A stretch of 64,000 nt of DNA, from the NCBI GenBank assembly GCA_009103225.1, contig RHPI01001946.1, positions 186,001 through 250,000 on the forward strand, in the 5' to 3' direction. The stretch comes from Chlorokybus atmophyticus. Its lineage: Eukaryota; Plantae; Mesostigma and Chlorokybus algae. Both the position numbers and the translations under genes were made by a program. The notes below the pieces were generated by a model. The model worked only from the letters and a program-made list of their open reading frames with translations, was not told the DNA's origin and ran no database searches. This document shows positions 9,001 through 42,000 of the stretch, in pieces; the stretch's first letter is position 1; each line of letters begins with the position of its first letter.

Positions 9001-11653
9001 CTATTGAGAGCTGGTGTTGGCCCTTTTCCGTCATAGCGAGGAATGTCTGCCGCATTGATGTGTATGCTGCATTGCACTGAACTTGATGATAGACCCACTG
9101 CGCCTCAATGTTGACTGTTCTTTGTCTACACAGGAGGATGCCCTTTTCCCGCGTCGAGTTGACGCTCTCTGGGGTGAGGCTTTGCGGCAGGTGGCTTGTG
9201 GCAAGCGGCACACGGTGGCACTCACAATGTCGGGAGTTGTGTACAGCTGGGGCTGCAACGACTATGGCCAGCTTGGCATAGGTGAAATTGCTTGACCCTG
9301 GGCTTTCAGGAAGCGTTGTGTTCACCTTCACAAATACCTGACAGTAGTTGAAGCTGGTAACAGCATGTCTGACTGTTGTCGCTGTGCATACAGGCGACAA
9401 TCCTCCTGTACAGTTGCAACCAATACTTGTGCAAGGCAAGCTGCACGGAGTGATGGTTGGTGCTGTAGCTTGTGGGATGGACCACACTGCTGCGCTGGGG
9501 GACAATGGTGCTGGTGTGTTTACATGGGGATGCGGAACCAATGGGAGACTTGGCCTAGGTGATGTCAAAAACCGAACCACACCAGATCATGTAACAGCAC
9601 TCCGCAACAGGCGTGTGATTCAGATTTCCTGCGGTGCTTCCTCCATGGCTGTTGTATGCCGGCATCAGGATGTTTCTCAGGCGGACACGGACAAGTGTTT
9701 CACTTGCAAGACCAGGTTTGGGTTGGGCAAGAAGAAGCGTCACACGTGCTACCAATGCGGGCATGCATTCTGCGGCAACTGCACATCAAATAAGGTGTTG
9801 AATGCCACGCTGGCGCCTTACCCAGACAAGCCCTCCCGAGTATGCGACCCGTGCTTCAAGAGTTTTGGTCCAGAATCCAAAGTTGGAACACTTGTTGCTG
9901 CTGCCAAAGCAACGCAGGATGCAAGATTGCCTGCGCAAGGTGGTCGACCTCCCCGAGCTCCTCCAGCTTACATGGCAAGCGCATCGTTCACAGAGTCTCA
10001 ACTAACTTCTCGCTCTCAAAGATCCCAGCCGCTGCCAACTGGCACCATGTCACCCAGTGCAGTCCTACACCGACCACTGCCTCTGAACCCGCAAGCGCAG
10101 CAGTTTCTCCAGAGCAACTTCTCGCACGTGCTGCAGCGAGGAAGTGCACCACCTCGACCGCTTCGCAGCACAGGCAGTCACAGTTCCTTGAAAGAACTTG
10201 ATGCGCTGTCAGATCCACCATCTTCGCCCACTCCCAACGATGACACGCTGTCCAATACAACAGGCGACATGGAGCTGCCGTCGCCAAGTGACAGCGAAAG
10301 ATCTCAATGGGGAAGAACACCAAAGCCTCACCTAAACATGGCCATTGCAAATGAGGAAGACTTTGTAGTCGCCATCCAGAAGCGTGTTCATGATGACGAC
10401 CTTTCAGTAACAGTGTCGCGCAAGGAGACTAGCATTGCGCGCACGTCCCCCATCAACACATCAACCTCGCGATCAGTAAAGCCCTCAAACAGTATTGGGT
10501 CCTCGCTCAACTCTTATGGCACTCCTGGCAGCACGTCTGTACCCAAACCATCTGAGACGGCAGCTGAGAGTCGCCCTCCCGCGAGTGACGTTCCCCGTGC
10601 CATCAGTGAGCTGGAGGAGAGGTGTCAGCGTGCCGAAAGGGAGGTCATGCGTCTACGCTCCTTACTGGATGCTACCGCAAAGGTAGTGCTATGCTTGACA
10701 CTTGGCAAGCTATCCATAGCTGCAACACGTCACAATGAGCACACTGTGATCCCTATACTCAATGTCAATGGAACAGTTATTCTGGCAAAATTGTGGTATC
10801 ATTGTTGTGTGCGGGTTTGCAGGCATCTAACAAGGCCAAAGCTACGTCGAACGGAGGGCAGTCTCGAGGTGTCACCAGTCCAACACGCACTTTGCCTGTG
10901 CTGACCACAGGGCGCCAAAGTGAAGGAGCAGGCAAAGGCAAGAGTGCCCCTCGTCCAACAGGTGTGCACACTAGCCTTTGCTGTCATGCAAGTCGAGATG
11001 GTTGCTGACGACTTTGTGGTTGCACAATAGGTAGCGCAACCAATGCCAAGGCCACCACGTCTGCATCATCATCAGCAGGAATGGTGCGTGCGACCGCCAT
11101 TCGTCGCAGCACGCTAGGCGCCACGACAAGCAGCAACCACTCTAGTGGAGGGACTAGCCCAGGTTCAAGCGGCAAAGAACAGGTTGCGTTGCTGGTGCAA
11201 GAGGACTCGTACGACTCCGCCAGTAGCACCCCACATGCTGCTCATCCGTCAAGTAGGGACATCACTCTACCCGTTGGAACCAGCAACCTTGCATATAATG
11301 GCGGCGAGCAAGAGTGGGTGGAAGAGGTTGATGAAGGAGTGTTCATGACGGTCGTGAGGGCACCAACCAGCGCTGCAAATGAGCTCAAGTCCGTACAGTT
11401 TTCAAGAGACAGGTTTGAGGCTGGAGCAGCCGAGAAATGGTGGGACGAAAATCGCCAGCAGGTGCTGGCGGCCCTTGAGAGCGCAGTCCCACCGTCTCCA
11501 GTAGCTTTGCGCCGCACCTTTTCTGATCATGACATTGAAGGCGATTCAACTGCGAAGAGCACAGACTCACAGGCATCTGGCCCTGCGCGCTCGAGTGTGG
11601 TTCACATCTTCCCCTTCAATCAAAATGACTCGCCGCAGTCGAGTGTTGGCTAG
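6057..11653 (+). CDS. PRAF/RLD: PRAF/RLD-family protein (PH, RCC1 repeats, FYVE, coiled coil, C-terminal BRX domain), multi-exon
   Basis: Exon 1 6057-6110 and exon 2 6278-6364 give ...TVDQ|AIIALRKGAALLKYGRRGRPHFCHFKL (PH domain of plant PRAF). Further PH exons SLQW..LRLGQRT, SFSLIY..RSLDV|VCKD..E.EMWLVGL. RCC1 exons (GDVYCWGEG, VACGAFHT, ISCGPWHT, GRLGHGD). FYVE C..C..RF...KKRHTCYQCG.AFC..C..RVCDPC in ORF 9348. BRX EWVEEVDEGVFMTV..NELKSVQFSRDRF..AEKWWDENRQQV before TAG 11651-11653. The start codon is inferred. Confidence 0.93.
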
Positions 11654-25318: not shown

Positions 25319-25862
25319 NNNNNNNNNNNNNNNNNNNNNNNNNNNNNNNNNNNNNNNNNNNNNNNNNNNNNNNNNNNNNNNNNNNNNNNNNNNNNNNNNN
25401 NNNNNNNNNNNNNNNNNNNNNNNNNNNNNNNNNNNNNNNNNNNNNNNNNNNNNNNNNNNNNNNNNNNNNNNNNNNNNNNNNNNNNNNNNNNNNNNNNNNN
25501 NNNNNNNNNNNNNNNNNNNNNNNNNNNNNNNNNNNNNNNNNNNNNNNNNNNNNNNNNNNNNNNNNNNNNNNNNNNNNNNNNNNNNNNNNNNNNNNNNNNN
25601 NNNNNNNNNNNNNNNNNNNNNNNNNNNNNNNNNNNNNNNNNNNNNNNNNNNNNNNNNNNNNNNNNNNNNNNNNNNNNNNNNNNNNNNNNNNNNNNNNNNN
25701 NNNNNNNNNNNNNNNNNNNNNNNNNNNNNNNNNNNNNNNNNNNNNNNNNNNNNNNNNNNNNNNNNNNNNNNNNNNNNNNNNNNNNNNNNNNNNNNNNNNN
25801 NNNNNNNNNNNNNNNNNNNNNNNNNNNNNNNNNNNNNNNNNNNNNNNNNNNNNNNNNNNNNN
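25319..25862. other. Assembly gap (N run) preceded by (GA)n
   Basis: Direct reading; ORFs spanning it are artefacts. Confidence 0.99.
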
Positions 25863-28800
25863 GGGGGCACACAGCAGTAGCGACATCAAGAGTTGACAAG
25901 GACTTTATGTGCCACATGACCAATCTGTCTAGCTCCACGTGTGGGCCCCATGTCTCTGCCGTGCACAAATGTTTGTTTTGCTTATGAAATCAGAGTTGGC
26001 ATTATCTGTAAAGTACTGACAGGCCAGGTTCGTGCTTGCCTGCTCACAACTTACCTCGCACTCGCATGTAGAGCGCCATTGGAGCGAGCGCGCATCGGCG
26101 AATATGTTGTTGCCATCTGCTGATCTGTTCCACGCCTTGCTTAAGCCAACTGCATGCGCCGTTGAGCTGGAGTCGGAGCCAAAGGTCTGGCGGCAGCAGT
26201 GCCGCTCATACTCTTGTTGTGCGTGTTGTTGAACTGCTGATGTGCATGCAGCTAACTGTACTGCTCTGCTCTGAGACTCCTATGCTACTAGCATGCCACA
26301 GAAGTGATTACAACCACACCCGGCGCACTACTGCCGCAGGCGGCCTTGTCGCCTGTGTGCAGTCACAAAGTAAAGCAAGCGAAAATGGCGCACAACCAGA
26401 AGGTGCAGTAAACGAAATAACGGCTTGATTTGAGACATCGCTGTAAGGGTTGATAGCGGACTGTTCCGAACCCAACAGAAGCCCCTGGCCAGTCGGGGCT
26501 CAAGCTCAGTCTTGGCCCTAACTGTCCCCCGTAGCTGGAGTGCCACTCGACATTGCATGTACAAGCCTCAAGCGAGCAGCGTTCTAGTGCGAAGGCTACT
26601 ATGCACGCAAGTATTGCACTTGCTTAATGCAGTGAGATGCTGTGCTTCGCACGCTGCGCAGCCTACGTAGGTTGTGTACCAGTCGCCGCGCAGGGCATGC
26701 CTGTGCTTACAGATTGCAAGGCACTGTTGGTCTATGGATAACCACTTTGTCGTCATCTGCGTCGTCGTCTGCGTGCTGATCGTCGTCGGTACGACCTTTG
26801 CTTACCTTCACCGACGCCTCCGCCCCCTTGGCAAGTCGATCGACACTGCAGGTGACGCAGCGCCTAAGCTTCCGGAGGAGGGTCCGACTGGAGTCCATTT
26901 GGAGGTCGGTGGCGCTGTCGGCGTCGGCGTCGGCGGCCGGAGGGCGGAGGGCGGAGGGCAGCTTGTGTGCTGAGCACTATCAACGTCGTCGACGGCGTCG
27001 TCCAGACGGAGGCAGTCGGCAAGTGCGCTGCCAGGAGCGTAGGCAGGCGCATGTTTAGAGGTGCAGCTTGCAGGAATAGCCAGAGACCAAAGTTCATTGG
27101 GTTTTCACGCAATTGTATTCTGTACGTGCACTGTGTTGTTTGGCAATTACCTTCATGCCGGGAATATAACTTGCTTCCTAGCAGCAAGTCAAGCGCTTGT
27201 CACCTGGTCTAGTTGTTGAAACCAGCGGGCTTAGAGGAATCCATTTGTACATCACCTTACCGGATGTGCAGGGAGGTGCGGTGTGCGGCTGGCGCCAAGA
27301 CCTGCCCGAGCGGCCGACGCTCTCCCCGACGGCGTCACTTAAGCTGTGTACCCAATTTCTGGTTACTGTTTGGCAGTCAGGCAGCGGTCTACATGACACT
27401 CGTTGGATGATATTTGGTATGATGAACACTGCAGCAGCACGACTGCATGCCACCGCGCCATGTGGTGCTGTGGCATGCTGTCGTGCCCTTGATGACTGAC
27501 ACGCTACATGACAGCAGTTGTTCCCTGATTATTGTGTAAGTTACAGCCTCAACAGCCACTGGGCACGGGGGCACTCCTGAACCACAGTTCCTTCTCCTTG
27601 CTTGACTTAGAACTTTCCTAGTTACTCCGTACATGTGGCTGTACATTGTGTGCTGCTATCACAAGGTCAGTTAGCAGCATGTCATTCTGGCCAGGCACCT
27701 TAATGTTGTTCGTGTTGCCCAAAGCGTTTCTTCCAGAGGCAGCTTTTCTGATGTTTGATGTGACTGATCACGTATGCTGCTGGCAACCTCGGAAGCATAG
27801 GGCAAGGTACAGTGAACCGCAAGTGTGTCACCCAAGGGTCAATGCTCGGTACATTCATCGTACATGCATCTTCAGTGGAGGGGGAGGCATGCCACCCTTG
27901 TTTTAGCACGGGACATAAGTTGCATGGCATCTCAGTCCAGAGTTGCAAACTGGCAGTCGGTGCATAGCGCACGGCTCTGTTGTTGGGCTCTGGCTTGTGT
28001 GTTTGTGCACGTGGTCTGTCGTACAATACTTATGTAGCAGACAAAAGGCGATTCAGTTTGCTGCCCCGCCCGCATCCTGGCTGGTTGCCAGAGCCATATG
28101 GAGGTACTTGACATTCGCTTTGCTGCTAGTGACTCAAACTCTCTCGTGTATTAGCTCTGTTGACTGTTGGTTGCTCTGCTCTGTGTAGCGAACTGTCCTG
28201 CTCCCGATCTTGCCAACCATCGTTGTGCCTTTAGGTTGGCAGCCTGCCCTTTTTTGACTAGCAGATCAACCCGGGCTTGTGACATTGACTCACAGCGGCT
28301 CCATCATAGGCCCTAGCGTACTGTTGCTGTGACTGACTCTAAGGGTCTGCCACGATGGCATGAATGCACCTGACTTCCAGTACTCTCATTGATTTCTCCC
28401 TTGTCCTCACTATCTCACCACCCGTGCGAGCACAACAAGCACAAGGCAACAATTCCGTGTACAACGACAACGACTTCAAGATGATTCTAAGCAGTCAAGT
28501 TCTCCAAGAGTACGTAACAGCTCATGTGCATACACTTACTGCCTCAGCCCTTGCAATACCACATGTTTCATGTACCCTATGCATTGCTGTGTGCAGTCCA
28601 CAGGCTGATGAGCCGCTGCCGTCGGCACGGGCTACGGCACAATCTGATGAGGTGGTGACAGCAGCGGCGCCAACAAAGTCGATCCCCAACACGGCCGTGG
28701 GGACAGTGGCTGACTATGCGTACATGTACTGGAAAAACGGCCTGGTGAACCCCGCCAACCTTGTCCTTGCAGTTTAGACCAGCCGCCTACGGGTTTGAAC

Positions 28801-28941
28801 TATAACAAGGTGAAGCTCCTGACGTTTGCGGCTCTCGAGCAACGTGTCTCCGGTTAGTTGACTAGCATACCCGTTACTACTGGGCTCGGTGTGTATGCGC
28901 GTGCGCACGCGTGCGCGCATGTGTGCATTGTGGTGTGTGTG

Positions 28942-28942
28942 T

Positions 28943-28981
<39 letters not shown>

Positions 28982-29109
28982 NNNNNNNNNNNNNNNNNNN
29001 NNNNNNNNNNNNNNNNNNNNNNNNNNNNNNNNNNNNNNNNNNNNNNNNNNNNNNNNNNNNNNNNNNNNNNNNNNNNNNNNNNNNNNNNNNNNNNNNNNNN
29101 NNNNNNNNN
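28942..29109. other. Poly-G tract followed by an assembly gap (N 28982-29109)
   Basis: Direct reading of the sequence. Confidence 0.98.
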
Positions 29110-30789
29110 GGGAGGGAAGCGGGGGTTGGGCAAGTACAAATCATTGTTGGCAATGACATGATTAAAGGCGGTCTACCTGGGGCAGCAAGCCTCACCTTCG
29201 GATTGATATACCATGGTGTGACTTATATTGTGACCGGCACGTTAGGGAAGTAAGTTACCTATTTGCTTGGTGGCTTGGAAGGCGACACCATGCATGTGTA
29301 CTTACTTGCTTGCTTTGTACTGCAGCTTCTTGCACAATGTGGTGCTGAGCATGGCTGCCGGTTCAATCGTCGGGTCTTCAACTCCCTCTCATGGTCATGT
29401 AGAAGATTCATGCATGCACAATGGCACCCTGCCGCGTAAACACTCATTTGGTACAATGCTGATCGTCTCATGTGCACTGCCAACTGGCGCCCCTTCCATG
29501 AGCCGCTCGGCAATTGATTGATCTGTGTGGCCCGACCGGGTAGCATTCTTCCTGCAAATCACCCCTCAGAAAAGTGACTTCTCCTCCGCGGACGCTCGCA
29601 TGTTTGTTAGGCTGAGCGCCCCTGGTCTGGGTTCCGCCTTCACCATCGCCGGCTCCAGCTTCACCTCCGTGAGCAGTGGGAGCGTCGCCAGCTGGCCTCC
29701 CGGCACGTACGTACATCACAATGGTGGTAGTGATAACGTTTATGTTGTCGTTGTTGACACGTCTGTCCTACCTCGCAGTTGGCCCCCACTGATCAGGCGC
29801 TCAGTTACGTTGGTGGCATCTTTCAACAAAGCTGAGCGTGGTGTCACCAACTTGCGCACTCCCATCACAGTGAAGTCTGACCAGGTTTGTTCCCTGGCGC
29901 AAATGACTTAGCTAGTTGCCAATCAAAGTGCTGTGTGCTAAGCTGAACTTCTGTATTGTAATGCGATTTACCACAGACACTGCCTGCAGCTGTCTCCGAC
30001 CTGCTTGTGCATTATGTGGAAGCGCAAGGCTGGCACGACATCACTCTGCGCAACGACAAGTACATGTCATTCTCAAGCCATGCAGGTCGGTTGAAGAGGC
30101 TTGACGGTTGACATGCAGGCAGATGCCGCTGGGAGACCAGCGCTTGAACCGCATCGAGCGCGTGACGGTGATTGTAACCAACCCGAGTGCAAGCACTCGC
30201 ATCGTGAGGCTCAGCGTCTCCAAATCCAAAGTGGTCTTGTTTAAGACGTTGCAAGTGTTGCAGACAGCCTACCTGTTGTACAATGCTCTATGCTCTAGGT
30301 AAAATAATGCTCCGTGCATTAGGATACAAGTTGAGCAGCAACCCCCTATCCTGGAAATGAAAACAATGCGTATGCGTGCTCAATGACTGTTTGCATGTGT
30401 ACACTTACACATCCCTACAGGGCACCAGCGCCTACAACACCAGCACGTTACAAACTCGCTTGTGCAACAAAACACGGCACGCTACTCATGGTTGGCCTAA
30501 GTTGGCTTGGGTACAGACGTTAGCTTGGGTTACAACAAGCCCGCACATCACTGCCGGCCCCACCACCAACCACGCTACAACCAGGCTCCTCAGCAACTAC
30601 CCTCACCGCTCACCACTAAGTTTGCCGCCAACCAACCGCCGCCGGCACAGGACAACAATCTTGCCGCCTGTACAACTACATGGACAGTCTGTGAAAACGG
30701 CGCCGGCGGGAAAACTACCAAGCAAACCTTGATTCCCCTCGGCCCCGAGGAATTAGGTTAGTGAGTTGGCCCTCCGGCTGTTAATACTC

Positions 30790-33606
30790 GATGGCTTTAT
30801 GCAATACGTCTGGAGTTCCAGTTCCAGCTCCAGTTCCAGTGGGCAGACATGCGGGTTTGGAAGGGCGGCGGTGTGGGCGGCGGGCATAGGGTGGAGGAGT
30901 TGGCAAGTCGCTGCCAGCATGGTGGTGGTGCAGTGTGCGGGGTCCGTATGACCCCAAGAGCAAAGACACCATCGTCAATAAGCTTGAGCCACAGCACCAA
31001 TGGCGTCAGCACCCGCTCTCTTTCCACCAACCATCAGGTATGTAAGGCGGCTTGATTGGACTGCTTTCTCGTCTGCTCCCTCTGACGCATGCTCATGTAG
31101 CTTGCTATCTTCGTAGTGCTCGATTGCCAATGCTAGTGCTAGTCGTCGTAGTGCTGTGAGCGCATTTGCTGCGTTGCACTAACCCACAATCGAACTGCTC
31201 ATGTAGCTTGATGTCGTCCCTACTTGCTGTCGTCGTGGTTGCCACTGCTTGTGCTGTGAGTGTTACTTGGTCAGCTGTTTCTGCTGCGCTACACTAACAA
31301 TCCGATTACTTATAATCACAGGCTAGTGAATCAGCTGCTAGAGTGCCAACGAGGGCGGACGTGAAAGGTTGTAAGACAAAGAAGGAGCTGGAAAAACTCT
31401 GTCATGATTACTTGTTGCCACGCAGTGGCACCAAGCTGCAATTGAAGCGAAGGCTGCTTGGCAATGTGCCAGGGGCAGCAATCCTTGGATGCTTACCGCA
31501 CACCACCTTAGGCGGCGAGCAGCATCAGGGTCCCAAACAAAAACCGCATTGTCACCAACGACGAGGATGAGGATGAGGAAGAACCCTCTCCACCACCTGC
31601 TGACAGCAAGTAGGTCCATGATACCGTTGTTAAGCAGGTGTATTTTACTGTGCATAGCATTGTCACACAACTGCACTTCGCTTGCAGGAAGCTGACATTG
31701 TCTTCACCACAGTTTCGGTGTCCGCGATACATTGATTGATTTCATTGTGTGCTCAGGCCCAGTGATAGGCTGATATGCAATGCCCATGACTGTACTTGCC
31801 AGCTCATCTCGTCAGATGTGAAAAAGCGGCGCAAGACATTCTACAAGCATAATGATCTTGGGGTGAAGAAACGGTGCAATGAGTTTGTTGAGTACGTCTT
31901 TTTAGTGTGATGAATGTAATGAGTGTGATGATCGTGTCTTTTATTGTGTGCGACTATCCAATGATGGGCCGCTTTGCAATTTTCCTAGCTGTATTGCACG
32001 GCTCAACCCGTTATAAGTGAGAAAGCGCGCCACAAGATGCTATAAGCATATCGGTTGAAGGGCCGAGACACGGTGCAATAAGTGTGGAGTAGTTGGAGTG
32101 GAACCCAGCCGGGCAAAGGTTCGAGTCACTAGTGTCATGCTTTGCAAAAACTGCCTCAGATACAAGTAAGTGAACTGCAGTCTTAGAGTTGGGGCAACAC
32201 ACAGCATGCAAGACTGCATTGGTATTGAGCAATTGTCCTACATGCACAGGCATGCAGCAGAACGAGCTAGTCGCATTACTTGCTCATTAGACGGGTGTGA
32301 CAAGGCTCCCATCCGACCAGAACAATGTGTACAAAACATGGCTACCCGGCCAAAAAGTGCCACAACGACAACTGTGACAAACAGGTGCCTGCTGAAGACA
32401 GAATTCTGTTGTGCTATGACTGTCGTATGGAGAAGATGGAGGAAGACTTTTTAAGGTGAGTGTTTTCTGTGCCAGTCAATGAGAGCTTGCTACCACTTGG
32501 CAATGTGATTACATGTCTAATTCTATCTCTTGTAGAGGACGGGATTGTAGAACAACGGACTTTGTGTGACAACCCTAAATTTAGGGATGTCACACAAATT
32601 TGTTCAGCGTAGCCTGCCGGACACACCGAGTTGAACCATTGTATCTCAAGTAGGCAAATTGCAATTTCCATGGCAAGCACAGGCGTGTGACCAACAAAGC
32701 ACTTGACTCATTGGTCTGTCACTTGATTGCAGTGGCCGCACCTGTGCGATCGATAGCTACGAGTTGCAGACGTTCAATATTTTTTGCAGGCTGTGCTGAT
32801 ATCACTTGTTTTTCAAGTGAGACTGCGCTAATCCCGTGAGGGGTTGTCGATACCTGCGGGAAAAACACGACCTGTTTGTAACTTGTGCAGGACAATGGAA
32901 AAAGCGAAGGATGTCTACTCATAGTACGTCTGTACAATAGTTTACTCTTTTTAGCATCATAAAGCTACAATGCTCTATGCTCACGCTCTAGTCTACTATT
33001 TAGGCATACACCAAGCCTATTTACCCACGAACACACAGGCTTGACGAGGAGGACGCCTTGGACCGCTGGCTGCGCAGTCGCTCAGAATAAAGGTCGGACA
33101 TAGAGCCATGGGAGCATTCCCACTTGATACTCATTTAAAACCACGAAAAGAAGTTGGGAGACAGAGGGCTGCATTCTTTGTCAAGAGCCGAGCATGTGCG
33201 GTTGCTTGGCTCTGTTGAGGACGTCAAGCGACAAATGGAGGAGTCTTTTCTGCACTGGCCTGTAAGTGTAGTATGCTACACATGTCACTTTACCGTAAAA
33301 TGCCTTTAAGTCACTTGCAGCATTGAATAACAAATGCAATGCAGCTCATCTTGTTTTGCAAATGGTATGATGGGATGTGAAAACAAGGTCTCTTTCTGGT
33401 CCCATGATCATTACCCGCCGATCAAAGACTACCACTTGAGCGACCCACAGCAGCGCGCACATGCATTCCCCATCAAGCGCATCTTTCCATGCCTAAAAGG
33501 TTTCAACTCCGCCAAGGGTAGCAAGCATATTCCCCCAACATATAAAGCTTATGACGATTGGATGCGCTTACGTAACACCACCATTTTGCTTAGCTCTGTG
33601 ACCTAA
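30790..33606 (+). pseudogene. Nested decayed multi-exon gene with a SAP domain and CxxC..CxxC zinc-finger-like motifs
   Basis: 31343-31460 KTKKELEKLCHDYLLPRSGTKLQLKRRLLG fits the SAP consensus. Also RCNKCG...LCKNC (~32075-32165) and KCHNDNCDK...LLCYDC (~32355-32430). In-frame TAA codons in exon 33048-33262 (..RSRSE*RSDIEPW..LI*NHEKK..) and a frameshift before the acidic DEDEDEEE tract (~31545). Confidence 0.6.
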
Positions 33607-35221
33607 GTTTCTATTGAAACGCGGTTGATAGCTGACCTGGCAGACAGTCAAGATACGCGGGCTCCAGCATAGTTCATACTTCTTGTTGGATAGCCCTGGT
33701 GGTGATAGTCATGCTGTATACAAGTGCGCTATAAAGAGCGCCAATGAAAGTGTTACGTATCTTTGCAATTTCAACACAGGTGTTATGTAGGAGTGAACGA
33801 CAGCACACATACATTGAAAGTCTATTTGTTTCCGATTCCTGTAATCCTCGCCGCACTGCATGACACCCAAGTCAACCCCATCGGCATCCCCATACAAGCA
33901 GGAGTATGAAGTAGTCACTCTGCCTTTATACACATGATGAATATAAATCAATGACTGTTGTTGCTTACCCTTGTCAGTTATATGCATGCTGACTAACCAC
34001 TGGTTCTTGCAGGTGTATAAAAACTCGCTTAAACCCAACTTGGTACAAAGGCCCTTTCTGGGGATGGTGGCCTTGCCAGTGCCGGCGAGGGCGACGTGGG
34101 CAATGGTATACACATCAGTAAACGCCTTCGAGGGTGGGGCGCCAGCTGTCTCACACGTGCAGCTGGCGCTCACGGATGCGATGCCCATCACATAATGGGA
34201 CCAAGTCGCCCTTGCGTAAGTGTGCGTGTGGTTGTCAACACCGGCGTTGGTACCAAGCTTGGTACCAACATCAAGCCAGCATAGCCACTCACCTAATGGT
34301 TGACAGGTCTTGGGGTGAGACGTTTTTTTCGAGCCGGATCAAGGGCGTACTACGCGGGCAGTAGTTTTACACATGCGGCCGATATACGTGCTTGGCAACA
34401 AGGTGAGCTGATGTACCAAAAATGGCAATACCGTGGCATCTCAGTCTCCAAGAGTGGCATAGTGACTGAAAGCATTATTGATAAAACAGAGCAAAAGGGA
34501 GAAGTTTTGGTGGACACAGAATGTTGGTGGAGCCGATGTTGCTGCAATTGATACTGGCTCATCACTGCCTCAATTCAATGTTGAGATCCGCACATATTGC
34601 AAGAGGTAGGGACCGCTTGATTGAGGTCAGTAGCTAGTATGCGCATACATTCACACTTGCACCAGAACGTCCACTTACCACGAATCGGTTTGTACCCTTG
34701 TAGACAATGTATGCGGGCAAGTCTGAAGACAGCAAGATGAAGATCCATTACACCGCATGCGTAGCGCGTTCAGATGATGCTGCAAGGGCTGCTTACCACC
34801 TTCACATGGAAGTGGTCTTTGGTGTGACATTTTGCCGCTTCCCCATCTGGCAGGTTGGCTTCTCCTCCAGAAGGCTTTTCCTCCATGTTCAACATGTACA
34901 AGTTGATGAAAAAAATGATGTTTCTTATCTTGAGTCACTTGTTTTGTTATGCAAATGGCAAGCTCAACTTACGCTTGGGGATACAACTACCAATTTGCGT
35001 ATGTATGGTAACGAGAAGGGTCTCCTTTATGAATGGACTCGCAAGCTGGGTCAGAGTAAACAATAACGCTATATTTTCATTGCTGCCCTGCGATTGCAGC
35101 AATGTGGTCACACTTGTGATGCTGCCTTCGTACTCGTGACACAGTCAACGGCAAAGATGCATTTAGGAACGTCGCTATACAAGCTAAATGGCAAGAAGAA
35201 TTGGGTCTCTCTTACACAGGT

Positions 35222-35334
35222 ACATACATATATGTATATATATATACATATATGTGTGTGTATATATGAAGTATTATTCTCACCTTGGTTCGTGGCACTA
35301 ATTGATATATATATATATGTATATATATGTGTGT

Positions 35335-35381
<47 letters not shown>

Positions 35382-35409
35382 AAGTGGTATTCTCACCTTG
35401 GTTCGTGGC
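35222..35409 (+). repeat. Microsatellite-associated tandem duplication of an exon start (22-bp identical core)
   Basis: tattctcaccttggttcgtggc occurs at 35275-35296 and 35388-35409, each preceded by TA/TG microsatellite and aagt. Confidence 0.9.
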
Positions 35410-36921
35410 TGATCGATCTCTCCCCGCCCAGAGCGCTAGCGTAAAGGGCACTAGTGCCACTGATGCCTCGCGTTGGTTTGCCATCTCCCAATGGAGTGCG
35501 TTGCTGAACGGTAAGCCCGCTAACCCTTTCATGGCTGGTTCGTATGCTTGAAACTGCTCGACAGTGCACTCAGTGTCATGAGTCACGCATGTGGTCGTAC
35601 TCAAGCACTTCATCCTTTACAGAACGCGGCATATACTCAGGCGCCACCAACGCGCCCATTGGGCAGGTCTCCATCATTGAGGTGGTTCCGCCACCCTCAG
35701 TGCATGCTCTCAAGGCTGGTGACGACATTGACTGCATCATAGAACAGGTGTGGCACAATCATATGTTTGTGAGCTTATTGATCTGCAATTAAGCCTTTTA
35801 CTATGTCCACCAAGACATGTGTCTCTTTAGTGATGACATGCATATGCAGGTCATCTCGCCCAAGTACCGTGTCGATTACTACGGGCCCAATTTCAACATG
35901 CAAGCGCGCTGCTCAAGTGGGAGAACAGTTGGCGGCTGATGTACCGAGAAGTTGCGCTCAATACGCCTACTTTTTGTCAACACAGCTGGCAAGCTACTTC
36001 GCCAGCGGCCTCCAATGATACAAGTCAGTGAGCGAGTGGACATGCGGACGCTCACTGTCAGTGTTACCTGAACTTGCAGTTGCTACTCAGGTTGACCAGG
36101 CCAACCACGCGCAATTCTCAGTTACGGGCGGCCTTGGCTACCTCGCAATGACTTTTGCAGGCGTGAAGGGCTTCAAGAACCCGAAACTGGAAATGAGCTT
36201 CGATGGAACCTCTTGGAAGGTTGTGGACCAGTCTGTTCATGGCAAGGACTCCTGGCAGGTACAAGCAGAGTCTGGTGTTCGTTCAATACATGCCATCATT
36301 TGTGACCGCGCACAGTTGTTGGCTGTATGCATGCTATACAGTCCGCAAATCAGCAAGAAGAAGTGCTGATCTGCATGACAAGGACTGTGTAACACGAGCA
36401 ACACATGAATGCAACTCGTCCCTGGTCTTGGACAGAACTCTCTGCCGTGTGCAGGCGGACTTTGAGCCTTCTGCCAGCACGTGGGAGCTGACCTTCAGCG
36501 TGTCTGCGAACAACGCGGGAGACGCATTGAAATCGCCTTGGTTCCGCTTCTCCATGCCAACAGCTGCAGTGCTCACTGGCATCCCAACCTGGAAGTGACA
36601 GCCAATCGCATGGCCAACATGTAAGCGCATGACTTCAACTTGACTGATAAGTTGACTAACAAGTGCAGCTCATCAACCACGTCTTGCTTACTGATTTGAG
36701 GGACCTTTCAGACGCTGCTGTGGGACCTGCAGTGGATGCGACCATACTATGACTCATTCTGTATTAGATGCAGGCGTCCTGACAACTGATAGTAGGTGCA
36801 CAGCAGTTAGGGTGGGACATGTTAGATTGGAGTGGTTGACAGGGTCGTTTCTTGCTGTACACGTGTCAATCAAATGTCTCTACAGCGAATCTACTGAACT
36901 GTCATTATGCATCATGCCTCC

Positions 36922-39034: not shown

Positions 39035-42000
39035 ATGTGGTTCAGCAAGGCGCTGGACAAGTGGAAGCGCAAGCAGAAGGCGAAAACCCTCAGGCGGCGG
39101 CTTGAAGCGCCGCCGGCACCGCCGCCGCCGGCTTTGGGAGCAGTGGGTGGACTTGGAAGGGGAGTTGGTGGTGGTGCTGGTTCATACCCCGTTGGGACAT
39201 TGTACGTGCCGCAAGCCTCCCCACCGCTGTCACCTCCACGGCCCCCTCCTCCACAACGGCAGCCTCCCCCGCCGCCTGCTCCTGCCGCCGAGCCGCTCAA
39301 GGCTCTCCCTGCTGTGCCCCACACGGAATACGGGTTTGCTGACACTCCAAGGCAATCTGTAAGCAATGAGCCGTGCAACTGTTGTTCACATGCAGCACGT
39401 TTGTTCTTTTCTTGAATAAAACACAACAGTTGCTTATTATTTTACATCTGCATGGCATGCGCAAGAGAAGCACGCCAGTTACAGCAAGTACTTTTTGTGT
39501 CTTTGCGTGGCTCGCAATGTTGCTAGTATTGCATACAGAGCACGAGCTTTGCTCAAATAGCAGCTGACCGGTCGCTGACTGTGATGCAATGCGAGTGTGA
39601 GTTTTTCTGGCATGTGTGTCTGCTTTTACACGCAAGAATTGTCCCGTTTCTTGCATAAAGCTATGTATAACCGAATGCATGCGTGTGCAGGAGCTGTATG
39701 ACAGCTTCGATGAAAGGTACCAAGCGGAAGAGCGCGACGATGTCCCGGATCTACCGAGTGCAACACCGACCTTCTCTGTCTACCCAATACAGGTGCATGG
39801 ACTGGCACACAGATACACGGCTACTGCTGTGTTTTTGAGAGAACTCAACACATGCTGACATGAGCGCATGTGCGTTTGCAGCAGGCTGCACCCTTGCCGC
39901 CGAAGCCTTTCAGATGGAGGAAAGGGGACTGCATTGGCTCGGGGGCGTTTGGCCGAGTGTATAAGGCCATGAACGATGAGTCGGGGGAACTCATAGCCGT
40001 CAAGCAGGTATGCTCTATGTCCCGAGTGTTATACCATCAGTGACCAAGCATGAGCAGTGCACTGGTACAACACAGCACATTGTCGTTAACTTGGCTGTTG
40101 TGCAGGTGGTTGTGCCCATCAACAGCGCCACTGACAGAGACAGAGCACAACAGGAGATGGCTGATTTTGAGAAGGAGGTCAACCTGTTGCGCACTTTTGA
40201 TCACCCGAACATTGTGGTAAGGGTGCTTGCCGCAGCTCACGGAGCCAATGGGCTATCTTTTGTGCATTACATGCAATGACAGTCCGGGACTGGCGTGCAG
40301 CGTTACTTGGGCACAGAGAGACACGACAACTGTATCAATATCTTCCTCGAGTTTGTTCCTGGTGGCTCTATAGCTTCCTTGCTATCGCAATTTCATCGCT
40401 TCAACGAAAAGGTAGCCCAGTTGGAATGTTGCTGCCTATACACAGCTGCTGGGGTTGGCATGCGCTGATGATGTTACAACAGGTGATCAGGTCGTACACT
40501 CGGCAGCTATTGCTCGGGCTTGAGTACCTGCACAAGCATGGTGTCATGCATCGTGACATCAAGGGTGCAAACATACTGGTGGACAAAGTCGGCGTCATAA
40601 AGCTTGCAGACTTTGGTGCATCCAAGAAGCTGCAGAATCTGGTATGTGGTCACATGGTTGCTTGTATAATATTTAGCATTCATCAAGGTACTAAGCGCAT
40701 CCCCAATACAGGTTACCATAGCAGAAGGTGTAAAGTCTATCAAAGGTACCCCCTACTGGATGGCGCCAGAAGTCATCAAACAGGAGGGCCATGGCCGGCA
40801 AGCAGACATATGGAGTGTCGCATGTACAGTGATTGAAATGGCGACCGGCAAGCCACCATGGAGTCAATATGAATCTCAAGTACGCAAGTCAGCTCTTTAA
40901 ATGCAACAACTCTGTGCTCTGGTATGGGCTATGTTATGAATGGCTGCCTGTTGTTGCAGGTGGCGGCTCTTTTCCGCATAGCTCAGGATACAGAACCACC
41001 ACCGTTTCCAGAGTATTTATCAGCGGAGGGCAAGGACTTCTTGCTGAAATGCTTCAACAGGTCGGTAGTACTCTCTGGTGCAAAGGGAGTTGCATCGTTG
41101 TTGTGTGCACAGCACTTCCATCAGTAATTTGTCATTTGCAAGTGAGTGACTGTGTCAACAACAGGATCCCAAAAGACCGTCCTACAGCAACAGAGCTGCT
41201 GAGGGTTCGTGCGTGTTGGGAAGGACCTGCCTGCATGTGGGGCATCTTGTGGAACAATCTTAACAAACATGTCTTCCTTTTGCAGCATCCCTTCATCACC
41301 AATTCCTTGCCTGAATTGGATCGCAATGACAGTCTACCAAAGCGAGTTACTCCCCACCCATCCCCTGTAAGCGGTGCCTGCGGCATCTGCAGGTGTTGTT
41401 ACTCATCAATCGTGTGTTGTTGCTGATCACCTTCAGTTGTATGCAGAGCACCGATCGCAGTTCTGCACGCAGCGGTCACAGCACCAGCCTCACTCAAAGC
41501 ACATCCGGAACGGGCACGGCACTTCAGTAAGTGTCCACAGCAGCATATCGCACGTGTTTAGTCAGCATAGCTTTGGAATCAGCTTGTATCATAGTTGGAC
41601 ATTGCAATGTGTATTGCTGACTCTACACGTGTCATTTATCTATGTCAAGGCTGCAGTGGGTGTTACTAATGTCTACATCTTGTTACATGGTTGTTGCTTA
41701 AACTGTGTCCGTTTACTTGCATGCTGATATGTACTAAATGAATCACATTGCAGGTTCAACTCTACTAGCACAGATAGTGGAGCATCTGCAGCAGATCTTA
41801 AGGATCTCAAGGCACGGTTGCTCACCCAAACGCCACATGTGGATGCGCAAGGTGCGCACCAGCAGCGCAGCAGAGGACCTTCACCAGCACCATCTCCTAG
41901 GTGTAAAACTCCAATCCCCACCATTGCAATATCAGCTCCGCCTCCTGCTCACCAAAGTGGCGAATACGGTGCTGGTGACTCGTATGAAGGCATGCACGAC

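Follow-up and report, generated by a model that had tools for sequence, protein, structure and literature searches.

An intron-bearing pseudogene of a bacterial-type protein family in the alga Chlorokybus atmophyticus

A broken multi-exon gene on the plus strand

We analysed a 64,000-nucleotide stretch of Chlorokybus atmophyticus DNA (contig RHPI01001946.1; the whole stretch is hereafter the window), and focused on a broken gene at positions 28364–36598 of its plus strand. The locus consists of about 19 plus-strand coding blocks, collinear with a family of all-β proteins of about 840 residues and separated by 14 canonical GT-AG introns of 59–282 nt. It is very probably an unprocessed, intron-bearing pseudogene, a dead duplicate in a small Chlorokybus family that descends from one horizontally acquired bacterial gene.

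Motifs were located in three-frame translations of the plus strand, and single exon blocks or homologue proteins were used as search queries. A lesion-free block (exon B, 29570–29884) searched against 1.84 billion representative proteins retrieved C. atmophyticus Chrsp63S07050 (EukProt/JGI Chlat1; here P0002), which has long residue runs in common with several further blocks of the locus. Later searches added a second Chlorokybus protein, Chrsp104S01265 (P0003), and two metagenomic proteins, P0004 and P0005. Another match of the representative search, P0001, was rejected as a spurious repeat protein. In tblastn of P0002–P0005 against the window the blocks follow the order of the family, and the joined E-values obtained with P0002 are 1e-35 to 1e-36. 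A protein-to-DNA aligner written for this analysis, which accepts frameshifts, large gaps and introns of any phase, gave scores of 1264 (P0002), 851 (P0004) and 826 (P0005). These scores and the tblastn E-values are far beyond chance. Upstream of 28364, and also inside a large insert described below, the aligner overfits by placing short spurious exons; those were disregarded. Identity to P0002 is 49.6% over 595 columns of the splice-aware alignment. Moreover, in blast comparisons with all family proteins P0002 ranks first for 12 of the 14 lesion-free exon pieces that it covers; it is without the C-terminal third of the family. Neither tblastn nor a search of the window found a second family copy in it. 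Pfam and NCBIfam scans of ten exon or block translations gave no match, and phmmer of exon B against PDB returned nothing meaningful.

None of the motif blocks, ADYAYMYW through WFRFSM, is missing, and their order is collinear with the whole family profile. The motifs named in the original prediction for this locus were each recovered on the plus strand where expected: RLNRIERV (30105–30299), NPIGIPIQ (33748–33906), SHVQL..WDQ (33947–34215), SWGE/EPDQ (34307–34402), WTQNVGG (34466–34606), DYYGPN (35793–35936), GGLGY/DQSVHGKDSWQ (36019–36366) and DFEPS.. (36455–36598). That prediction saw about 15 GT-AG-bounded blocks in one protein; the collinearity holds, and the number of blocks is revised upwards to the count given above. 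It also placed the gene start at 26734. Homology begins instead at ATG 28364, which is probably the true start because the signal-peptide-like N-terminus aligns with that of P0002 and a TGA lies directly upstream (28361–28363). Inclusion of 26734–28363 in the gene has no homology support, as the alignments upstream of 28364 are short and spurious. At 26734–26973 on the plus strand, an open reading frame (ORF) that begins MDNHFVVICVVVCVLIVVG encodes a single hydrophobic helix and, after it, a stretch rich in Gly and Arg; no homology links this ORF to the family, and it is probably not exon 1.

The features of the gene are as follows; the insert that interrupts it between blocks 7 and 8 is listed in a later section.

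28364–28509 (+), coding block 1: begins with ATG and a degenerate N-terminus resembling a signal peptide, followed by ..AQGNNSVYNDNDFKMILSSQVLQ(D); counterpart in P0002 is the signal peptide and ADGN..KYLLNREAVLAD; donor GTACGT at 28510
28597–28852 (+), coding block 2: ADYAYMYW .. QTSR .. NYNKVKLL; TAG 28775–28777 and frameshift 28787–28797
28853–29134 (+), phase-1 intron (GTTAGT..GGCAAG): contains a G38 run and the assembly gap 28982–29109
29135–29249 (+), coding block 3: NDMIKGGLPGAASLTFGLIYHGVTYIVTGTLG; donor GTAAGT; 61% identity to P0002
29326–29397 (+), coding block 4: ..EHGCRFNRRVFNSLSWS; frame at odds with the phase-2 junction
29398–29482 (+), interruption of 85 nt: GT start, no AG end (..gccaa, then CT); non-canonical gap against P0004 and P0005
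29483–29884 (+), coding block 5: TGAPSMSRSAID*SVWPDR .. PITVKSDQ; TGA 29519–29521
29977–30059 (+), coding block 6: TLPAAVSDLLVHYVEAQGWHDITLRNDK; canonical introns on both sides
30119–30236 (+), coding block 7: QMPLGDQRLNRIERVTVIVTNPSASTRIVRLSVSKSKVV; 3′ end cut by the insert
33821–33903 (+), coding block 8: VYLFPIPVILAALHDTQVNPIGIPIQAG; seen in tblastn and alignments
34013–34215 (+), coding block 9: frameshifts 34025–34031 and ~34045–34070; TAA 34193–34195 replaces the residue before WDQ
34307–34402 (+), coding block 10: SWGETF / FEPDQGRTTRAVVLHMRPIYVLGNK; 1-nt frameshift in a T7 run, 34322–34328; D459 replaced by H
34490–34625 (+), coding block 11: KFWWTQNVGGAD .. RTYCKR*GP.L.E; TAG 34607–34609 and frameshift 34619–34622 (against P0002 and P0005)
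34704–34853 (+), coding block 12: TMYAGKSEDSK .. SDDAARAAY .. RFPIWQ; 55% identity to P0002
34854–34951 (+), interruption of 98 nt: starts GTTGGC, ends ..tgcaa without AG; non-canonical gap in all three alignments
34952–35055 (+), coding block 13: QMASSTYAWGYNYQFA / YGNEKGLLYEWTRKLGQ; frameshift ~35000–35006 (against P0002 and P0004)
35145–35219 (+), coding block 14: ..LYKLNGKKNWVSLTQ; 5′ boundary uncertain (35145, 35157 or 35168)
35434–35537 (+), coding block 15: ASVKGTSATDASRWFAISQWSALLNGKPANPFMA; intact
35623–35747 (+), coding block 16: ERGIYSGAT .. VVPPPSVHALKAGDDIDCIIEQ; intact
35850–36023 (+), coding block 17: VISPKYRVDYYGPNFNMQ / ALLKWENSWRLMYREVALN / LLFVNTAGKLLRQRPPMIQ; frameshifts 35904–35905 and 35963–35966
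36100–36258 (+), coding block 18: ..NHAQFSVTGGLGYLAMTFAGVKGF .. DQSVHGKDSWQ; intact; start may be 36080
36455–36598 (+), coding block 19: ADFEPSASTWELTFSVS .. WFRFSM ..; ends at stop TGA 36596–36598

The assembly gap at 28982–29109, immediately preceded by a run of 38 G (G38), sits between the phase-1 donor at 28853 (GTTAGT) and the acceptor AG at 29134. The left block ends ..EQRVS plus one base, and the phases fit across the gap (G + TA = Val); residues 157 and 158 of P0002 directly flank the gap-bearing intron with no loss. The gap thus falls entirely within an intron and conceals no exon, and the assembled length of this intron is provisional. The intron between blocks 14 and 15 carries AT-rich 20-mer repeats and a (TG)23 microsatellite (35224–35374).

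Disabling lesions

A lesion was counted when two or more homologue alignments showed it or an invariant motif supported it. Four in-frame stop codons occupy conserved positions. TAG 28775 replaces the Q of QTSRY, which is invariant in P0002–P0005, and TGA 29519, seen against P0002, P0004 and P0005 alike, immediately precedes the invariant W149-P150-D151-R152. TAA 34193 lies just before WDQ, and TAG 34607 falls within KR-T-GP. In addition, at least nine frameshifts are distributed along the coding blocks. Those at 34025–34031 and ~34045–34070 jointly move the conserved NP.WY(K/R)G to another frame, and the 19 residues between the frameshifts at 35904–35905 and 35963–35966 match the family in a different frame. 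Both of the latter, in block 17, are seen against P0004 and P0005 and in tblastn to P0003. The frame of block 4 does not fit its phase-2 junction, which indicates a frameshift at ~29326–29346; one near 35170 was left uncounted because an alternative acceptor avoids it.

Two interruptions, 29398–29482 and 34854–34951, start with GT and end ..AA in place of AG. The former is either an intron that has lost its acceptor to mutation or an insertion, and the latter is probably an intron with a mutated acceptor. Furthermore, 26 residues do not vary among 45 family members, and the copy differs from the family at four of them (G340, W363, G438A and D459H). The copy thus has neither an open frame nor the full set of invariant residues, and no functional protein is made from it. 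The original prediction of at least two nonsense codons, several frameshifts and a 3.6-kb insert in a dead copy was right as to the lesions and the outcome; the count is revised to four stops, at least nine frameshifts and two acceptor-less interruptions.

The insert and its nested transcript

The copy is further broken by an insert within a coding block; the insert itself contains a spliced transcript:

30237–33820 (+), insert of 3.58 kb: splits the coding block; flanked by an imperfect 15-bp duplication (30228–30242 and 33817–33831)
30896–31034, 31319–31609 and 31757–31936 (+), spliced transcript in the insert: two GT..AG introns; RNA contigs of runs X1 and X2 match at 100%

The flanks of the insert, AAAGTGGTCTTGTTT and AAAGTCTATTTGTTT, are the two copies of a duplicated target and are identical at 11 of 15 positions. 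Both (..SKSKVVLF ending at 30242 and KVYLFPIP.. from 33817) encode K-V-x-L-F, which the homologues have once. No in-frame GT-AG splice is able to remove the insert. A perfect 17-bp direct repeat, TACAATGCTCTATGCTC, occurs at 30279–30295 and 32966–32982 and brackets 2.69 kb that include the nested transcript. Chance alone would give only ~5e-4 such perfect 17-bp pairs in 4.2 kb, which suggests that these 2.69 kb arrived in a second, younger insertion; the repeat looks like its long target-site duplication. Terminal inverted repeats or other transposon features were not found in the insert, and it was therefore not typed as a transposon; further copies of it are absent from the window.

Read evidence came from Logan contigs placed on 29210–35200 (5,991 nt). 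Contig depth over the nested transcript is relatively high in RNA runs. Its ORF, from ATG 30949 to TGA 31568 (ending at 31570), has a weak SAP-like match (SAP_new25, E=9.8e-5) that is below the cut-off of that model. A second open frame follows in another phase, with an acidic stretch and a Cys/His-rich part, and Cys-rich ORFs continue downstream of the transcript to ~32460. The nested transcript may represent a frameshifted or bicistronic small gene. Elsewhere in the insert, 32561–32598 forms a 38-bp near-perfect palindrome with 19-nt arms and no spacer.

Transcripts and paralogues in Chlorokybus

In 29210–35200, no contig is at least 99% identical to any pseudogene exon. Contig pieces located on exons are only ~90% alike (33847–33898, 30019–30057, 34702–34756 and 29628–29667). 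Those in runs X1 and X4 come from the same strain as the pieces that match at 100%, and so represent transcripts of closer paralogues and not of the pseudogene. This argues for a silent pseudogene.

At least two annotated Chlorokybus paralogues, P0002 and P0003, exist elsewhere in the genome, a possibility that the original prediction had raised. It had also supposed that the gene was later lost from the lineage; since there are intact paralogues and paralogue transcripts are seen, the family has been kept in Chlorokybus. P0002 and P0003 belong to the same family as the pseudogene and have its motif order and an N-terminal secretion signal. Unlike them, the pseudogene has stops, frameshifts, lost acceptors and the 3.6-kb insert, and no transcript of its own was seen. 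It is only ~50% identical to P0002, and the RNA contigs point to a closer, unsampled paralogue.

The public gene models of both paralogues look flawed, with retained introns as the likely cause. P0003 has a private 35-residue insert (residues 700–734) that follows P0005 residue 600, and the pseudogene has an intron after residue 598. The P0002 model departs from the family at about residue 619 (P0002 ~668–709) and ends early; a pseudogene intron follows residue 619. These gene-model anomalies suggest that two intron positions are common to the pseudogene and its paralogues, which in turn suggests that introns were gained before the duplications. The locus combines 14 GT-AG introns, two of them at positions that coincide with anomalies in the P0002 and P0003 models, with multiple disabling mutations, as is characteristic of an unprocessed pseudogene.

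A bacterial family with an algal branch

A profile of the four proteins retrieved at least 419 homologues, nearly all of them unnamed metagenomic proteins of 800–870 residues. Named members are bacterial (Planctomycetota, Phycisphaerales, Hydrogenedentota, Sumerlaeota and Armatimonadota), and the nearest ESM-Atlas clusters come from Verrucomicrobiota and Planctomycetota, in agreement with the earlier proposal of a family of large, uncharacterised, secreted bacterial proteins. The same proposal included scattered copies in marine protists; none were seen, and in our non-exhaustive searches Chlorokybus is the only eukaryote among the named sources. Four family members have TAT signals, and some of the longer ones add LamG (PF13385), dockerin or a T9SS tail. 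No Pfam model matched the family core, including in a scan of 45 members, and neither phmmer with P0005 nor a 71-sequence profile found a sequence relative in PDB.

The bacterial proteins and the pseudogene are 35–55% identical in conserved blocks and have in common the motifs QTSRY, WPDR, RIERV, NPxGxPxQxSKNW, SHxQL, WxQ, SWGE, EPD, NVGGAD, TDDxxR, DYYGPN and GGLGY. They differ in gene structure and context. The bacterial homologues are uninterrupted single ORFs on bacterial contigs (those of P0122, P0005, P0073 and P0014 were examined), often next to sulfatase genes and in some cases extended by LamG, dockerin or T9SS modules, whereas in the alga the copies are interrupted by introns and begin with signal peptides of eukaryotic type. 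The P0122 contig (L001 1–18592) encodes four sulfatases, a GH29 α-L-fucosidase, a GH28 enzyme, SASA/esterase proteins and a PQQ β-propeller protein, and looks like a locus for the use of sulfated fucose-rich glycans. P0005 lies beside three sulfatases and P0073 has one 6 kb away; P0014 has no sulfatase-type neighbours.

We placed the two Chlorokybus proteins in an unrooted tree of 44 rows (IQ-TREE quick search, LG+C20). They are monophyletic (SH-aLRT 100) and lie inside a bacterial clade of 24 rows (99), as sister to P0122 (96). The nesting of the algal copies among bacteria, together with introns in a gene that is a single ORF in bacteria, supports the original idea that a bacterial gene entered the alga and was then intronised. 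The data fit one transfer from a bacterium to the alga, after which introns were gained and the gene duplicated. We found no published report of this transfer into Chlorokybus in the literature.

Predicted fold and putative function

The AlphaFold2 model of P0005, built with the family alignment, is all-β (pLDDT 93.2, pTM 0.92). Foldseek against PDB gave low-TM supersandwich matches only. VIA-align, run with the whole model and with its conserved core (P0005 405–752, pLDDT 85), returned a continuum of galactose-mutarotase-like supersandwich matches in which no single family stands out:

PL26 exo-rhamnogalacturonan lyase 5xq3: Z 16.7, rmsd 3.5, 246 residues aligned
OpgG (GH186): Z 16.1
GH38 C-terminal domains: Z about 15
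OpgD (GH186): Z 15.3
GH174 endo-1,3-fucanases: Z 13.9 and 12.4
Aldose 1-epimerases: Z about 13

The conserved core is thus predicted to be a galactose-mutarotase-like supersandwich, closest to PL26, GH186 and GH174 at the fold level only. The family had originally been described as LamG/ConA-like. That holds for the LamG domain (PF13385) appended to some longer bacterial members as an extra module; the core itself has no Pfam match to PF13385 or PF02210, and a LamG/ConA core was rejected in favour of the supersandwich.

Among the fold matches of the conserved core PL26 PcRGLX (5xq3) ranks first, and the nearest named ESM-Atlas clusters carry PL26 PcRGLX domains (scores 0.87 and 0.85), which we treat as a lead only. 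The two families differ in that there is no sequence similarity, a single domain aligns, the N-terminal architecture is not the same, and the Z-score is tied with those of many supersandwich proteins. Membership in PL26 was rejected: PcRGLX_1st, PcRGLX_2nd and PcRGLX_3rd had no match in 45 members at E≤10, and the profile search of PDB was blank. With GH186 (OpgG and OpgD) and GH174 (8jd7 and 9k1g) the family appears to have in common an all-β structure with a mutarotase-like supersandwich catalytic domain. The sulfatase and fucosidase neighbourhood of bacterial members would also fit a sulfated fucan substrate. Neither GH186 nor GH174 has sequence similarity to the family, and the Z-scores of GH174 are not set apart from those of aldose epimerases or GH38 C-terminal domains. 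A fucoidanase-like reading is accordingly one among several equal options at the level of fold, to which the sulfatase and fucosidase neighbourhood lends some support. Assignment to GH174 was likewise rejected, as phmmer and the profile search found nothing even though PDB holds 8jd7 and 9k1g.

Taken together, fold and gene neighbourhood make secreted glycan-degrading enzymes that act on sulfated or acidic polysaccharides the most likely identity of the family and our best inference. Candidate catalytic residues would be found among the invariant acidic positions E442, D449, D459, D486 and D541 (P0005 numbering). In the GH174 enzyme Fun174A, the catalytic residues are D119, E120 and E218 (PMC11943901).

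Origin and fate of the locus

In the scenario that we favour, a gene would have passed from a bacterium to the alga, where it would have gained a eukaryotic signal peptide and about 18 spliceosomal introns. Duplication would then have produced several paralogues, and the present copy would have been disabled by nonsense mutations, frameshifts, splice-site loss and the insertion of 3.6 kb of DNA. Several considerations weigh against this account or parts of it. The lesions are read from the assembly alone, as no genomic reads covered the exons for independent confirmation, and two of the frameshifts lie in T-runs (T7 at 34322–34328 and T5 near 35963) and could be assembly errors. The contigs are unable to prove that the pseudogene is untranscribed. 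The tree comes from a quick search and has long branches (algal ~1.0, P0122 1.22), which leave the exact donor lineage unsure. The proposed function is drawn from fold and gene neighbourhood only.

The lack of DNA reads over the lesions, the two frameshifts in T-runs and the assembly gap next to the G38 run leave some room for an intact, functional gene whose lesions are assembly or sequencing errors. We regard this as highly improbable. Each of the four nonsense codons reflects a base substitution at a conserved position, not an indel-type error, most of the frameshifts lie outside homopolymers, and invariant residues are replaced. Moreover, a 3.58-kb insert with another spliced, expressed gene splits a coding block, and the paralogues are visible in RNA contigs of the same strain, unlike the present copy. 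Bacterial contamination or a chimeric mis-assembly, to which the otherwise bacterial distribution of the family might point, has a close to negligible probability. The coding blocks are separated by 14 GT-AG introns, and annotated Chlorokybus proteins are their nearest relatives; streptophyte-type genes (RCC1-FYVE-BRX and a kinase) flank the locus, and algal RNA contigs match the insert at 100% with spliced joints. Introns and nuclear neighbours thus indicate genuine integration of this bacterial-type family into the genome of the alga.

It is also very unlikely that the family is ancient and vertically inherited in eukaryotes, with Chlorokybus merely having retained it, or that the gene moved from alga to bacteria. 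The unrooted tree and the long algal branches leave some room for either, as do the protein searches, which were word-indexed and length-limited and could have missed other eukaryotic members. On the other hand, Chlorokybus is the only eukaryote among source-named matches, named members span at least five bacterial phyla, the algal pair falls inside a well-supported bacterial subclade, and bacterial members occur in sulfatase and fucosidase clusters of the kind that bacteria typically use on glycans. A dead duplicate of a gene acquired from bacteria therefore remains our reading of the locus. The pseudogene itself is ordinary. Its parent family is unusual, horizontally acquired and biochemically uncharacterised.

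The locus draws attention to a bacterial protein family that numbers at least 419 members, lacks a Pfam model and has no relative of solved structure, and the pseudogene shows that the acquired family has duplicated and turns over. The sulfatase and fucosidase company and the fold suggest an unrecognised class of glycan-degrading enzymes, adopted by an early-diverging streptophyte alga. More tentatively, and with a probability that we put a little short of even, we propose an undescribed class of carbohydrate-active enzymes whose catalytic core is a mutarotase-like supersandwich and whose substrates are sulfated or acidic glycans. The family would have come into the Chlorokybus lineage a single time, from a Planctomycetota-like bacterium, would have gained introns before duplication and would now be subject to birth-and-death evolution. 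If so, the pseudogene would be a dated fossil usable to time intron gain and to find out whether the alga applies these enzymes to sulfated mucilage of its own.

Neighbouring features in the window

Exons of a PRAF-like gene with RCC1 repeats, a FYVE zinc finger and a BRX domain lie at 9348–11653 (+). This domain set is typical of streptophytes. On the other side of the locus, an exon at 40276–40836 (+) encodes part of a protein kinase domain (Pkinase, E=6.7e-19). A second assembly gap (544 N at 25319–25862) lies a short way upstream of the locus, within a low-GC stretch (GC 0.34 at 24–26 kb).

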